Shown piece after piece: positions 9,247-15,197 of a DNA stretch of 64,000 nt. A program made the translations under genes and the position numbers. The notes under the pieces are model-generated. The model saw nothing but the letters and a program-made list of their open reading frames with translations. It was not told where the DNA came from and made no database searches. Numbering within the stretch: position 1 is the stretch's first letter; each line of letters starts with the position of its first letter. This DNA is from Octopus sinensis. Lineage: Eukaryota. The DNA lies in assembly GCF_006345805.1 (NCBI RefSeq), contig NC_043013.1, positions 39,246,001-39,310,000 on the forward strand. The letters run 5' to 3'.

Positions 9247-9501
9247 CAGATTTACCAGGATCGGACTGATAGAAGTCCGCATTTGAGGTTGTTATTAATC
9301 TGCGTGTTGCTGTCGTTCTTTTATAAAGTTCACATGTCTCCTCCGAGTGGTAGAATACGAATGAATTACACTCATGTTTCAGGTAACACAATCCTGCACA
9401 CATTTCGCTATCGTTCACCTGTCTCTTCTGAAAGTAAGCTTCCTCAATTGTAGCGTTGGTGACTTTGATAAATTTACTTCGATTATAATATGACTCGTCA
9501 C
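9247..9501 (-). CDS. Gene X exon C: PAN/apple-like module (…NDSEMCAGLCYLKHECNSFVFYHSEETCELY…)
   Basis: tttcttacaaag acceptor and GTAAAT donor (alternative in-frame donor at 9256), 255 nt, phase 1-1. CxxxC…C..F.F….C.L signature. Confidence 0.85.
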
Positions 9502-9655
9502 CTTTGTAAGAAATATAATAAAATGAAACATTGAATACATAAAACTGAAGAAATCCTGATAAGAAAGAAATATAATGGGAAATATTTCAACTTGAAATAA
9601 TAAGTTATGTGTTTTGCAGTCATAGTTTGTCACTGATTTAATATATACGAAAGCA

Positions 9656-10095
9656 AGGCGGCGAGCTGGCTGAAACGTTAGCACGCCAGGCGAAATGCGT
9701 AGCCGTATTTCGTCTGTCGTTACGTTCTGAGTTCAAATTCTGCCGAAGTTGACTTTGCCTTTCATCCATTCGTGGTCGATAAATTAAGTACCAGTCACTC
9801 ACTGGGGTCGATATAATCGACTTAATCCGTTTGTCTGTCCTTGTTTGTCCTCTCTGTGTTTAGCTCCTTATGGGTAGTAAAGAAATAGGTATTTCGTCTG
9901 CCGATACGATCTGAGTTCAAATTCCGCCTTTGAGTTCAAATTCCTCTGAGTTCAAATTCGACTTTGCCTTTCATCCTTTCGGGGTCGATTAAATAAGTAC
10001 CAGCTACGCCCTGCGGTCGATATAATCGACTTTATCCGTTTGTCTGTACTTGTTTGTCCTCTCTATGTGTAGCCCCTTGTGGGCAGTAAAGAAAT
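9656..10095 (+). mobile_element. tRNA-derived SINE tandem array
   Basis: Full head and body followed by a second partial unit with a triplicated tgagttcaaattc. Confidence 0.85.
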
Positions 10096-11329
10096 AAGAA
10101 AATTTAACACGCCGGGGGAAATGCTTAACCGTATTTCATCTGTCTTTACGTTCTGAGCTCAAATTCCGAAGAGGTCGACTTTACCTTTCATCATTCCGGA
10201 GTCGATAAATTAAGTACCAGTTGCGTACTGGGGCCGATCTCCCCAAATATTTCGAGCCTTGTACCTAGAGTAGAAAAGTATATATACGGAAGCTTATATA
10301 AAAAATTTGAATGAAGAATTTTCCATTGTATTATACGGTCAGCGACTAATATTATTATTGTTAATTTTAGTTATATGCAAGTGTGGCTGTGTGGACACAA
10401 GTTTGCTTTTCAACCTCATGCTTCCAGTTCAGTTTCTCTCCGTGGCACCTTGGGCACGTGTCTACTACTATAACTTCGTGTTGACCAAAACTTTGTGAAT
10501 GGATTTGGTTTTCGGAAATAGAAAGAAGCCTGACGTACATATATGTGTGTGGGTGTGGGTGTATATATGGGGTGAGTGTGCATGCGCGCGCGCGCGTGTG
10601 TGTGTGTGAGTTTGTGTGTGCGTGCGTATGTCTTTGTATACGAGTTTGTCCTCCACCATCGCTTGCTGCTTTGCTTACGTACCTGAAACTTAGAGGTTCG
10701 GTAACAGATAACGATAGAATAAGTGTCGGGCTTAATTAAATAAGTCTTGGGTTGTTTGTTTTACTAAACACTTCGAGGCGGTGCCGCAGTATGCCCACGG
10801 TTCAACGACTGAAACAAGTACTTGATAAAAGATGCCAAGACTAGCCCCAAATCGTTCCAATCTCTTTTTTCTCTTAAGTTGCATATGAGAGCCAAAAACA
10901 GATGCGAATATTAGAATTGATAAAGGACAGAGAATCCAGAGATGAGGTCAAGGAGGAGAAATGCCTCAATGAAGGACAAAAGAATACTGTTTAATATTAA
11001 CCAGTATAAGGAGGTTTTTGGAGAACAGCAGAAGGAATACAAATATTTAAAGTGAAGGAGAGACACTCAACAAATCTAAGTGAAACTTATGGCTGGATAT
11101 ATCCAGATAAGAGTGAGGATTGACAGAGAAAGTAGTACCGATGTGTGCGAATACACCGCTTTCCGTAGTCTGAGTAAAGAGTGTGACCAAGGCAACATAT
11201 ATAGGCTACAAGTAAGAGATCATGAGGTACTTATCAAGGCTAACCAAAGATTTGTTAACATCGAGAGATTGAAGAAGCAACGTGCTATCTTCAAATCCTG
11301 ACCTTGAAGGTACTTTCCACCCCAAATGC

Positions 11330-12292
11330 CTTTTGTTCTTATCATATATATATTGTTAGTTGCAAGGGTTCTGCTGGACAGAAATGAAACCCGCCATCGC
11401 TGAAGAACAACTTCCAGAGAGTCAGTGTGTCTTCAGAGCCAACAGGACCACCACGGACATGGCGTTTGTTCTCAGGCAGGACCTAGAAATGTGTCAGAGC
11501 AAAACAAAGGGTTGTATGTAACATTCGTTGACCTGCCTAAAATATTTTATACAACGAGTCGGCAAGGATTATGGCAGATCATGGAGGGACTCGGTTGTAA
11601 ACCAAAGTTCCTGAAAATGCACGAAGACCTGTGCTGCGAAATCAGACTCAGCATTAACCTCTGAGTAACTTCCCCAATCTTAATGATACCGTCTTGATGA
11701 TAGCCTCTATGCCTGACGGCTGTATGTCCATATGAAGACCCTGGAACAACTGATCTAAGACTTCCTGTTTGCCGACGATGTTACCCTTTTTGTCCACATA
11801 GGAAGAGCCTTGCAATATATTCCTTCCTGCTTCACAGAAACTGCCCAGTTCTTTCAGCTAGAAGTCAGCTTAAGGAAGACGTAGGTACTCCACCAGCCTG
11901 CACCTCGAGAAGAGTACCACCCTCCACATATCCTCATTAGCGAGATTGAATTGAAAAGGGTCTATCATTTTACCTATCTGGGATGCACCATCACGCCAGA
12001 GGCCAACATCCACAGAGAAATCGACGACAGAGTTGCGAAGGCGAAAAGTGTATTTGATTTGAACATAGAAACGCGTGTGGTACAATAAACACATGAAAAA
12101 GGGCATCAAAATCAACATTTACAGAGCCAGTCATGGTTCTTACAACCCTCCCATATGGTTCGGACTCGTGGGTCACTTATCGCTACCATCTACGACTCCT
12201 TGAGCGCTTCCAACAGCGTTGCCTCAGCACCATCCTTAACATCTACTGAAGAGATTTCTTCACCAATGTAGAAATCCTTAAACATAAATCCT
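11330..12292 (+). mobile_element. Decayed RTE-BovB-like LINE RT
   Basis: EQNKGLYVTFVDL…GLWQIMEGLGC, LLFADD and FTYLG-like motifs. Copies at 15925-16930 and 53560-54150. Confidence 0.8.
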
Positions 12293-12600: not shown

Positions 12601-12828
12601 ATTTTATGAATTCCATATATAGCCAGTCATTTTGGCTCACGGTAACTGTGGCATTGAGAGATGTATAACTGGTCATGCTGCAGAGGCTTGAATTTAAGTT
12701 GTATGTGACAGCATTGCACTGAGTTTCGTTATAGCAACTCTGTATGCAATCAAATAATGGTTTAACTTGCTCAGATGTAGAATTATGTTCATCCAATTTC
12801 GCGCCATAAATGACACTTACTGGACACG
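12601..12828 (-). CDS. Gene X exon B' (duplicate of exon B)
   Basis: Identical to 5916-6143 on manual comparison, with intact splice sites. The ORF-track translations are also identical. Confidence 0.8.
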
Positions 12829-14757
12829 CTGTAATAATGTAATAAAAGATATAAATGTTATTCATTTAAATGAGAAGTACTGTAAGGTATTGTAGTAAAC
12901 ATGGTATGCAGCTAGATTTTATTACAAACACAGCCATATCTATAGATGTCTCAAGATGTCTGACTCACCTTTCCGTCACAAAATATAACTTACCTAACTT
13001 AGGTAAGTTATATTTTTTTACTTAGTTTATTCTGCTCCTTTAAGATAAGAATTACAACCGCAATTGTGAAGATATTCTTCACATTAATGTTTGTAATTCT
13101 TATCGTAAAGATGAAAATATGTCAAACAATTGGTACTATTTCGATTCAGCTCTCTTATATTCCATTTGGTCGGGCAGCACGAGACATCAGACCAGCGGGA
13201 TAGGCAAAAAGCAGAACATGATTAGCATATTCTTCTAGGAAAATCGAGCAGCCCGACGAAATTGTGTCCAAACAGAACACATACCATGTAGTAAAGATTG
13301 TTTACCAACATAACATGGCAGTCCCAGTTTAGGACTAATGTTGCAATTTAGCCTCAGGAGACATCGTCTCCAGCTGGCTATACGACACGATCTGGGAAAT
13401 AACCCAGAAATCGAGATACACAGATATTGTTTTTGAGCTGAGTGGTGGTGCTAGATTCCCTTGTTCGAAAATATAAGGACACATATCGTGTCGTATAGCT
13501 AGCTGGAGTCGATGTCTCCTGGGGCTAAATTACAGCAACATTAGTCCTAAACCAGGACTGCCATGTTACGCTGGCAAACAATCTTTACTACAAAGTACTG
13601 TGACTGAATATCTCACGTTGTGAGATTTAGAAACAGCAATCTTCTAAGGGTACATACCAGTTTCTGAGTATTGTCTTTGGTTGGATACGAAATTCGAACA
13701 ATGATAACTCATAATGTTGTGAAGCAACCTGGAACCGAATGAGTTCTGACGGCTTCGAAGTGCTCAGAACAGCGTCCAAGCTTCGCAACCGTTGAGCAAG
13801 AGAAGGAGTACAAACGACCTAAAGACCCGCACATTTGACCTCCTACTCAGACATTTGAAGCGTCAATCTCCCTTGCCCAGTGAGTCCCCAACTGCACCAA
13901 TAGGTCAAAATATTTTGAAGACTTCGGACACGCAGATAATTCTGCTATGAATCACACTGCTGAGATAACTGAAGCAGTCGACAACTTCGACGTCCTTTCC
14001 TGCAACAGAAGGACAAGATGGAGTCTCACAGGAAGCCAACGAAACATTGGCTCTTCTTGAGCCAAGAAACTCTCAGATCGAGTTTTCGTTTCCTCACACA
14101 GTGAAAGAAAAGCACATTTTTAGTTATTTAGACACTCAACAAGAATAAGCACACTATCTAGGCCAGTAATCCTAGTTTCACAATATATACGTCATTAATC
14201 TTAGCTTTACCAATGAATATTCCATTCGGTCAATTATCCAGTCCTTGCAGAGTTTGAAGCGAGCGGGATTCGAACCACAACCGTGACGGACCCCAGATCT
14301 AACTCGGAAAAAAACAGATGATGAGCAACCAATCCGAACCCTTCTCACAGCTTCAGTTTAACACACCGCTGCTGGCCCAACCATTCTTGCATGTATTCCT
14401 AGCAGTTCCCCAAACTCCATAACATATTCCTGTCCATCAAGAGAAACGCCATACAGCAGTGGATATATGCTGCATGCGGCCCTCGCCGAAAACTTTGCCT
14501 ACGTTTGATGAGAACTGGAAAAAGTAGTTACAAAAACCTGCTTGTTTTAATGGGTACCCTTACAGCTCCTACCTTCTGTATAATTCCTGCGATCATTCCC
14601 TAACAAAACAGGCGTCTACGACGAGCAGGGAAAGGAACAACTATGTTGTTTCTATTAAAATTTGAGATTACGTAGACATTATCTCACGTAGGATATGGAC
14701 AGTTCCCATGAGCACTATCTTTTGAATTTCTGCCATTTTGGGGTTCCTGGTATCTGA

Positions 14758-14936
14758 GCTATTATTATTATTATTATTATTATTATTATTATTATTATTA
14801 TTATTATTAGTAGTAGTAGTAGTAGTAGTAGTAGTAGTAGTAGTAGTAGTAGTAGTAGTAATAGTAGTAGTAGTAGTAGTAGTAGTAGTAGTAGTAGTAG
14901 TAGTAGTAGTAGTAGTAGTAGAAGTAGTAGTAGTAT
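14758..14936. repeat. Compound (TAT)n(TAG)n microsatellite next to the exon C' donor; equivalents at 9106-9238 and 48917-49015
   Basis: Direct inspection. Confidence 0.95.
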
Positions 14937-14942
14937 ATTTAC

Positions 14943-15197
14943 CAGATTTACCAGATTTGGACTGATAGAAGTCCGCATTTGAGGTTGTTATTAATCTGTG
15001 TGTTGCTGCCGTTACGTTATAAAGTTCACATGTCTCATTTGAGTGGTAGAATACGAATGAATCACACTCATCTTCCAGGCAACACAATCCTGCACACATT
15101 TCGCTATCGTTCACCTGTCTCTTCTGAAAGTAACCTCTCTCAATTGTAGTGTTGGGGACTTTGATAAATTTACTTCGATTATAATATGACTCGTCAC
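14943..15197 (-). CDS. Gene X exon C' (diverged duplicate of exon C; …CAGLCCLEDECDSFVFYHSNETCELYNVT…)
   Basis: Same 255-nt length and splice sites as exon C, open frame, PAN Cys pattern. Confidence 0.85.

Follow-up and report, generated by a model that had tools for sequence, protein, structure and literature searches.

The human G-gamma and A-gamma globin genes are the classic case of patchy gene conversion, with a converted tract that ends at a simple-sequence repeat in intervening sequence 2 (IVS2), and the red and green opsin exons provide a further example. A second body of work concerns the PAN/Apple proteins (PF00024), of which the set compared here comprises the N domain of HGF, the PAp domain of plasminogen, the apple domains of factor XI and prekallikrein, the apicomplexan lectins MIC4 and SML-2, and leech anti-platelet protein. 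Both meet in a 64,000-nucleotide stretch of the Octopus sinensis genome (contig NC_043013.1, positions 39,246,001 to 39,310,000 of the forward strand), hereafter the window, whose minus strand carries PAN-domain genes. Read as its reverse complement, the window matches chromosome CM016875.1 of assembly GCA_006345805.1, with 100% identity over window positions 1 to 30561. In the first of the PAN genes, gene 1 (LOC118766644), a pair of PAN exons, C and B, is present twice. The two copies of exon C (C and C') differ almost exclusively by amino acid replacements, whereas the two copies of exon B (B and B') are identical. The explanation judged somewhat probable from sequence comparison is that the duplication is older than it looks and has been mostly homogenised by gene conversion, that exon C would lie in a patch that escaped, and that the excess of replacements would reflect the ordinary fast evolution of the gene.

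Divergence of exon C

The four exons of the duplicated pair are the following. The orthologous locus of Octopus bimaculoides, L001, serves as the outgroup for polarity and relative ages.

Exon C' (upstream copy), 14943 to 15197, minus strand: PAN_1, 255 nt, phase 1-1, open reading frame (ORF) and AG/GT limits intact; in no annotated protein.
Exon B' (upstream copy), 12601 to 12828, minus strand: PAN_1, 228 nt.
Exon C (downstream copy), 9247 to 9501, minus strand: PAN_1, 255 nt; exon of the NCBI model LOC118766644.
Exon B (downstream copy), 5916 to 6143, minus strand: PAN_1, 228 nt.

A sequence-only reading of the window had counted 20 differences between C and C' over 255 nt, and a recount agrees: they fall in 16 codons, of which 15 are replaced and one is silent (TCG/TCA). 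The ratio of 19 replacement changes to one silent change also stands, as no path through any of the four two-hit codons includes a synonymous step. The differences comprise 13 transitions and 7 transversions and lie within 9259 to 9460; their distribution over codon positions (11:5:4) was not significant in a chi-square test calculated by hand. All four core cysteines are kept in C and C', as had been stated.

The view that change was confined to C' does not survive the comparison with O. bimaculoides, which assigns 10 derived changes to C and 7 to C' and leaves three three-state sites (codons 21, 45 and 61). Two N-glycosylation sequons and a cysteine had been described as gains of C'. The NVT sequon and the cysteine (Y39C) are indeed new, but the NET sequon is ancestral (TCA AAT GAA, S-N-E-T, within HSNET in O. 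bimaculoides) and was lost in C. Codons 20-21 and 60-61 are altered on both lineages, and the C' changes T14P, A16T, Y39C and T63A alter residues that every other copy keeps unchanged. On C, six of the 10 changes sit in two clusters of three in four nucleotides (9259 to 9262 and 9341 to 9344), and these may be multinucleotide events. One-sided ectopic conversion of the exon from known copies was rejected, the derived states being unlike those of the gene 2 exon C'' or of the O. bimaculoides paralogs, bar single sites.

Exon C stands out from its surroundings. Its divergence is 7.8% (20/255), against 1.54% (50/3257) in the rest of the duplicated unit (Fisher P = 4.8e-8). The non-coding segments that put this value in context are listed here.

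SINE body upstream of exon C, 9713 to 10062: a short interspersed element (SINE) with its partner at 15390 to 15713; putative marker of an old unconverted patch.
Low-divergence tract, 9461 to 9712: 2 mismatches in 232 aligned bp and a 20-bp indel; spans the head of the SINE, intron and the initial 41 nt of exon C.
Intron flank beyond the microsatellite, 8995 to 9107: 4 mismatches in 112 bp.

Local intron divergence, which had been proposed as a check, gives a divided answer: the intron directly upstream of exon C is low (9502 to 9712; 2 mismatches in 191 bp), but the SINE body and the 3' flank are elevated. The SINE copies had been put at roughly 10% divergence, close to the measured 8.9% (29 differences in 325 bp). 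This value departs from the background (P = 9e-12) and is indistinguishable from that of exon C (P = 0.76), some 250 bp away; the high divergence is thus not specific to the exon. The differences are polarised 13:13:3 between the copies and are mostly private point changes, not states of other SINE copies. Decay of CpG sites was ruled out as their source, as non-CpG sites are 6.7% diverged, and one-sided ectopic conversion from known SINE copies was ruled out by the symmetric (13:13) and mostly private differences.

The relative age of each segment was expressed as its divergence between the units divided by the divergence of the same segment from O. bimaculoides.

B tract: 0.04.
Intron upstream of C: 0.08.
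Reverse transcriptase (RT) block: 0.22.
SINE body: 0.42.
3' flank of exon C: 0.44.
Exon C, nucleotides: about 0.5.
Exon C, non-synonymous divergence (dN): 0.52, as dN(C-C')/dN(C-O. bimaculoides).
Exon C, synonymous divergence (dS): about 0.1, a value that rests on one silent change.

Segment ages thus run from 0 to 0.5 along one unit, which is a mosaic of sequences that differ in age. Such a mosaic would be accounted for most simply by an older duplication that was repeatedly and partly homogenised.

Identity of exon B

Exon B and exon B' are identical over 228 nt, in agreement with the sequence-only reading, which had added the caveat that gene conversion might be responsible. The caveat is borne out by the extent of the identity, which is three times the length of the exon and reaches into both introns.

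Gene-conversion tract, 5838 to 6538: 701 bp identical; exon B with 78 and 395 bp of intron.

The alignment of the units over 5734 to 7954 contains 30 mismatches in 2221 bp, with zero in 5838 to 6538. A run of 701 bp is improbable under the 1.54% background (permutation P = 1.5e-4) and more so when all sites are considered (P < 5e-5). Exon B had been set beside exon C as its invariant sister, but it is not a constrained exon: between O. sinensis and O. bimaculoides its dN is 0.132 and its dN/dS (omega) 0.87, close to the 0.93-1.07 of exon C. Because the introns are identical too and exon B evolves fast between species, the identity of B and B' reflects recent gene conversion rather than purifying selection. 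Homogenisation of the copies by short-read polishing is a remote alternative cause.

Selection and the gene-wide rate

Nei-Gojobori estimates for C and C' are S = 50.3 and N = 201.7 sites, dS = 0.020 and dN = 0.101, so that omega is 5.0. Taken alone, the excess of replacements is not significant (binomial P = 0.070, Fisher P = 0.064), and the ratio of 19:1 since the duplication does not differ significantly from the 25:8 of the remaining tree (P = 0.13). With these P values, and a SINE body that is equally diverged, the earlier suggestion of diversifying selection on one module is not supported in the form proposed.

Fast evolution is a property of the whole gene. Between the species, gene 1 differs at 108/608 non-synonymous (17.8%) and 22/148 synonymous sites (14.8%), with an omega of ~1.2; omega is 3.1 for exon D and 1.69 for exon A. 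In the linker exon D, omega is 2-4.6 in every comparison with a silent difference. Across ~7 kb of collinear non-coding sequence (window 787 to 20561 against L001 9832 to 24336), 667 of 6981 positions differ (9.6%), a figure to be read with the caveat that introns alignable by BLAST may lean towards conserved sequence. In gene 1, replacements outpace non-coding changes by a factor of 1.85 (Fisher P = 3e-9); the ratio is ~1.3 in exon B and ~1.8 in exon C, and higher in D (~2.4) and A (~2.3). Both species and both paralogs preserve the reading frames, the splice sites and the cysteine framework, which indicates that the gene is not decaying. Positive selection at many surface positions is a likely cause of the fast gene-wide evolution, and it is plausible that selection for change acts on the whole gene rather than on one module. 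The age of the old patches corresponds to ~4% intron-equivalent divergence (0.43 x 9.6%), and the dN between C and C' is then ~2.3 times neutral. As this is of the same order as between species, an extra burst is unnecessary.

Tandem duplication of the C-B unit

In O. bimaculoides, C and B each occur once in gene 1, which places the duplication of the C-B pair on the O. sinensis branch, later than the separation of the two species. Self-BLAST of the window delimits two units and the sequence between them.

Tandem unit 1 (C-B), 5734 to 12284, minus strand: 6.6 kb; collinear with L001 11308 to 19198.
Tandem unit 2 (C'-B'), 12419 to 16650, minus strand: 4.2 kb; ~1.0 and ~1.5 kb lost relative to the O. 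bimaculoides-like ancestral order.
Unit junction filler, 12285 to 12418: 134 bp, CT-rich.
Ancestral intron segment, 7955 to 8991: retained by unit 1, lost from unit 2 by deletion; ortholog at L001 16885 to 17665.
Microsatellite (TAC)n(TAA)n after the C donor, 9108 to 9240: directly adjoins the donor.
Microsatellite (TAC)n(TAA)n after the C' donor, 14762 to 14936: much longer than its unit 1 counterpart.

The unit breakpoints lie in a fragment resembling the RT of a long interspersed element (LINE) (12284/16650) and inside a SINE (5734/12419). The ~1.5-kb loss in unit 2 is the equivalent of 10066 to 11556. Transposable element insertions were ruled out as the origin of the segments specific to unit 1; both 7955 to 8991 and 10066 to 11556 are orthologous to O. 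bimaculoides intron and therefore mark deletions in unit 2. At the site of the 1.5-kb deletion, a 200-bp piece of unit 2 (15721 to 15928) is inverted relative to 10534 to 10733, with 90% identity, which suggests a rearrangement more complex than a plain deletion.

The (TAC)n(TAA)n repeat also directly follows the exon C donor at C'' (~48890 to 49040) and in both O. bimaculoides genes (L001 ~14190 to 14290 and ~3630 onward). Its position would thus have been kept since the split of gene 1 and gene 2 (dS ~0.5). Were the donor skipped, the frame would continue into poly-Thr/poly-Asn in O. sinensis, whereas that of O. bimaculoides would not. Coding use of this read-through ORF was ruled out, the frame being lost in O. 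bimaculoides and the annotated proteins using the GTAAAT donor.

A proposed history and its alternatives

Under the preferred history, the C-B segment of gene 1 would have been duplicated in tandem after the O. bimaculoides split, yielding the order signal peptide (SP)-C'-B'-C-B-D-A. Gene conversion between the units would then have brought most of the unit back to 0-2% divergence, and the most recent tract (701 bp, 0%) would span exon B and make it identical to B'. Two patches would have escaped overwriting: one is formed by the exon C core together with the adjoining 3' flank, the other by the SINE body. Both adjoin length differences between the units, namely a 1-kb deletion with the length-variable microsatellite, and a 1.5-kb deletion, and we infer that these heterologies halted the conversion tracts, as interruptions of this kind would be expected to do. 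The escaped patches would retain their original age, ~0.4-0.5 of the divergence between O. sinensis and O. bimaculoides, during which C and C' would each have gained ~10 changes at the usual rate of the gene, with replacements at about twice the intron rate and mainly in PAN loops. The locus would then be an ordinary, though neat, tandem exon-pair duplication with patchy concerted evolution.

Several observations weigh against this history. The silent sites of C and C' look young (1/50.3); the age of the old patches predicts 2.5-4.5 silent changes, so that one or fewer has a probability of 0.06-0.28, and the silent sites favour a young exon C by a likelihood ratio of ~2-6. The 5' edge of the diverged patch falls inside exon C (between 9460 and 9539), and a 20-bp indel persists in the neighbouring low-divergence tract. 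At its edges the duplicated unit shows ~2% divergence, a value that follows more readily from a simple young duplication. A higher or different regime of mutation and conversion may apply to SINEs: divergence from O. bimaculoides reaches 21% in this SINE and 12% in the adjoining intron, and ~6 of 20 differences in an alignment of SINE monomers resemble micro-conversions from neighbouring monomers. In addition, C' and B' stand as predicted exons.

These points lend some weight to an unlikely but serious competitor, in which the duplication is young, or a young conversion reset exon C together with its upstream intron, and an adaptive burst of loop replacements followed in both PAN-C copies, with glycosylation sites won and lost; at a neutral age of ~1.5-2%, omega would be ~5-6. 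The protein would then carry two recognition modules, or alternative cassettes, and conversion would have been tolerated in B and selected against in C. The silent divergence of exon C (0.020) does agree with the 1.0-1.5% of the adjoining intron, and the exon lies far above the unit background (P = 5e-8). The three-state sites at codons 21, 45 and 61, the double hits at codons 20-21 and 60-61, the placement of 12 of 15 replacements in loops of the model and a gene-wide dN in excess of intron divergence all fit such a burst. Its dN/dS above 1 is, however, not significant (P = 0.07) and depends on a single silent change, and a separate cause would be needed for the equally diverged, symmetric SINE body and the elevated 3' flank. 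The clustering of six of the 10 C changes, possibly multinucleotide, also weakens it, and the C' changes at invariant positions, including the odd cysteine of Y39C, resemble relaxation as much as adaptation. An improbable variant accepts the old duplication with conversion and holds that selection against converted haplotypes, not the adjoining heterologies, kept exon C distinct. One edge of the unconverted patch lies inside exon C, a random 200-bp patch would rarely fall inside a 255-bp exon of a 4.2-kb unit, and the family evolves fast; yet the patch extends into 3' non-coding sequence (8995 to 9107 and 7914 to 7954), the second old patch, the SINE, is wholly non-coding, and expression of C' is only predicted.

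Two further readings question whether C' is a used exon at all, or a separate one. That C', and with it B', is an unused pseudo-exon whose difference records lost constraint under neutrality is very improbable. The sole O. sinensis model passes from SP2 to C over C' and B', and Y39C, an unpaired cysteine, and T14P alter C' at otherwise invariant positions. Half of the changes nevertheless fall on C, the copy in the annotated model, and the ORF, acceptor and donor of C' are intact and the same as those of C; moreover, gene-wide omega is ~1, so rate cannot separate neutrality from function. It is scarcely credible that C and C' are alleles, placed in tandem by the assembly of two haplotypes. Most of the unit is 98-100% identical, and the assembly is, we take it, a long-read one of a heterozygous mollusc, both of which suit an artefact. 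Against it stand a window without runs of N, a specific junction, where a 134-bp filler was added and the breakpoints fall within repeats, and non-coding patches that are 9% diverged, at 0.4-0.5 of the between-species distance, and hence too old for ordinary alleles.

Gene 1, gene 2 and the protein family

The PAN-domain genes on the minus strand of the window appear to be two tandem paralogs of a family restricted to Octopus. Protein searches matched only four Octopus proteins and the isoform P0005, and found no product containing C' or the O. sinensis exon B; literature searches on the LOC identifiers and on octopus PAN/Apple proteins found nothing relevant, and one on heterozygosity of the O. 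sinensis assembly yielded nothing of use. In O. bimaculoides, LOC106868215 (P0001) is a protein of 279 aa with the order signal peptide-C-B-linker D-A. The annotated protein of O. sinensis gene 1, P0002, has 142 aa. The sister gene, gene 2 (LOC118766661 in O. sinensis), encodes P0003 and P0004, one in each species. Mapping of proteins on the window gives the exon order SP1, SP2, C', B', C, B, D, A for gene 1. The remaining exons of gene 1 and the PAN exons of gene 2 are as follows.

Gene 1 exon 1 (SP1), 20516 to 20561, minus strand: start codon with the opening residues of the signal peptide, MQPTMNMKIHFVLYF; phase 1, with GTAAGT as donor; found by tblastn with P0002.
Gene 1 exon 2 (SP2), 17044 to 17076, minus strand: remainder of the signal peptide, ALYLFVICCGV; phase 1-1; 100% match to P0002.
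Exon D, 3314 to 3406, minus strand: linker, SYKFEEKYNQDGIVSPKNCALKNLRMIYFKI; phase 1-1.
Exon A, 787 to 983, minus strand: third PAN-like domain and stop codon.
Gene 2 exon C'', 49043 to 49297, minus strand: exon of the paralog LOC118766661; outgroup exon.
Gene 2 exon B'', 46518 to 46745, minus strand: B-type PAN exon.

All introns are in phase 1, and exons C, C', B, B' and D are phase 1-1 with AG/GT limits. The donor of C and C' is GTAAAT, and acceptor and donor are identical between the two. Every combination of exons is open, including a product of all exons (444 aa) and single-cassette products (283 aa). The encoded product is predicted to be a small secreted glycoprotein with a signal peptide, PAN C, PAN B, the linker D and the PAN-like A.

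The model LOC118766644 joins SP2 to C and leaves out five intact exons (C', B', B, D and A); it is probably truncated or mis-joined. The model then ends in a LINE-RT-like exon at 7220 to 7312 (GKDVEVVDCFSYLSS...), which has a twin at 13908 to 14000. In the O. bimaculoides sister gene (L001 ~1 to 7600), isoform P0005 joins the signal-peptide exon to B and skips exon C, so at least one annotation handles PAN-C as a cassette exon.

Gene 2 and the neighbouring sequence show further features. In both species, exon B'' (46518 to 46745; L001 4901 to 5128) lacks one and the same pair of cysteines (FDC to FDN/FDI and SLC to NLY/AVY), which would be a coordinated loss of one disulfide pair with the remaining framework kept. 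At L001 27649 to 31968, a third and much more divergent PAN gene follows gene 1, with C-, B- and A-like exons of 27-33% identity, and its presence suggests that the family in O. bimaculoides is arrayed in tandem and numbers at least three genes. The intron between B'' and D'' of gene 2 contains direct repeats resembling a long terminal repeat (LTR) element (38824 to 39788 and 45059 to 46020; 965 bp, 98%, ~6.2 kb apart). Next to this pair lie inverted repeats of 235 bp and 99% identity (37348 to 37582 and 38135 to 38369).

PAN domain and predicted fold

Assignment to PF00024 (PAN_1) rests on scores above the cut-off of 21.4 bits: C' scores 36.1 (E = 6e-9), B 34.7 (E = 1.6e-8) and a C-B concatenate 63.1. 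The core cysteines C34, C38, C44 and C56 are invariant across C, C', C'' and both O. bimaculoides copies, and their likely pairing is as two nested disulfides around the helix. An AlphaFold2 model of exon C has a mean predicted local distance difference test (pLDDT) of 75 and a predicted template modelling score (pTM) of 0.69, a moderate confidence given a shallow alignment of four sequences. It contains strands at residues 10-13, 24-27, 44-50, 55-60 and 74-79 and a helix at 31-40, in the order beta-beta-alpha-beta-beta-beta. Mapping the variable residues on such a model had been suggested, and 12 of the 15 replaced residues fall in loops or termini (Fisher P = 0.047). A Foldseek search with the model retrieved the N domain of HGF, plasminogen PAp and an Eimeria PAN domain (TM scores 0.54-0.70, E = 2.5e-4 to 1e-3); a sequence search of the PDB gave non-significant matches only.

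Comparison with known systems

A diverged exon beside an invariant sister exon in a young tandem duplicate is a pattern easily made by patchy gene conversion, and the deciding control for claims based on such exon contrasts is linked non-coding sequence read with an outgroup. Replacements at about double the pace of intron change are what one would expect of recognition proteins, as in immunity, reproduction, saliva or mucus. O. sinensis gene 1 contains an extra, hitherto unannotated C'-B' cassette. If the cassettes are expressed, the locus would be a compact cephalopod system for domain gain with conversion and selection.

The closest parallel is globin-type concerted evolution. As in the globin genes, the octopus unit alternates near-identical and old segments, a conversion tract comprises an exon with its introns, and the limits of the tracts adjoin a microsatellite and large indels. 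Unlike the globin case, the duplicated unit is an exon pair within one gene and not a whole gene. The locus also resembles tandem duplications of cassette exons: symmetric phase 1-1 exons lie in tandem, all combinations are in frame, and skipping is annotated both for C (P0005) and for C' with B' (the O. sinensis model). It departs from these systems in that mutually exclusive use of the octopus exons, or a five-PAN protein, is a prediction from the genes alone.

With the PAN/Apple proteins, the octopus family shares the four-cysteine core C-x3-C-x5-C-x11-C and a predicted fold that superposes on HGF N, plasminogen PAp and the Eimeria PAN domain. Like factor XI and the microneme proteins, the octopus protein is predicted to be secreted and to carry several PAN modules in series. 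It differs from other PAN/Apple proteins by the absence of partner domains (kringle, protease or lectin-kinase), and the searches found its sequence relatives in Octopus only. In contrast with the known members, the octopus gene encodes one PAN module per phase 1-1 exon.

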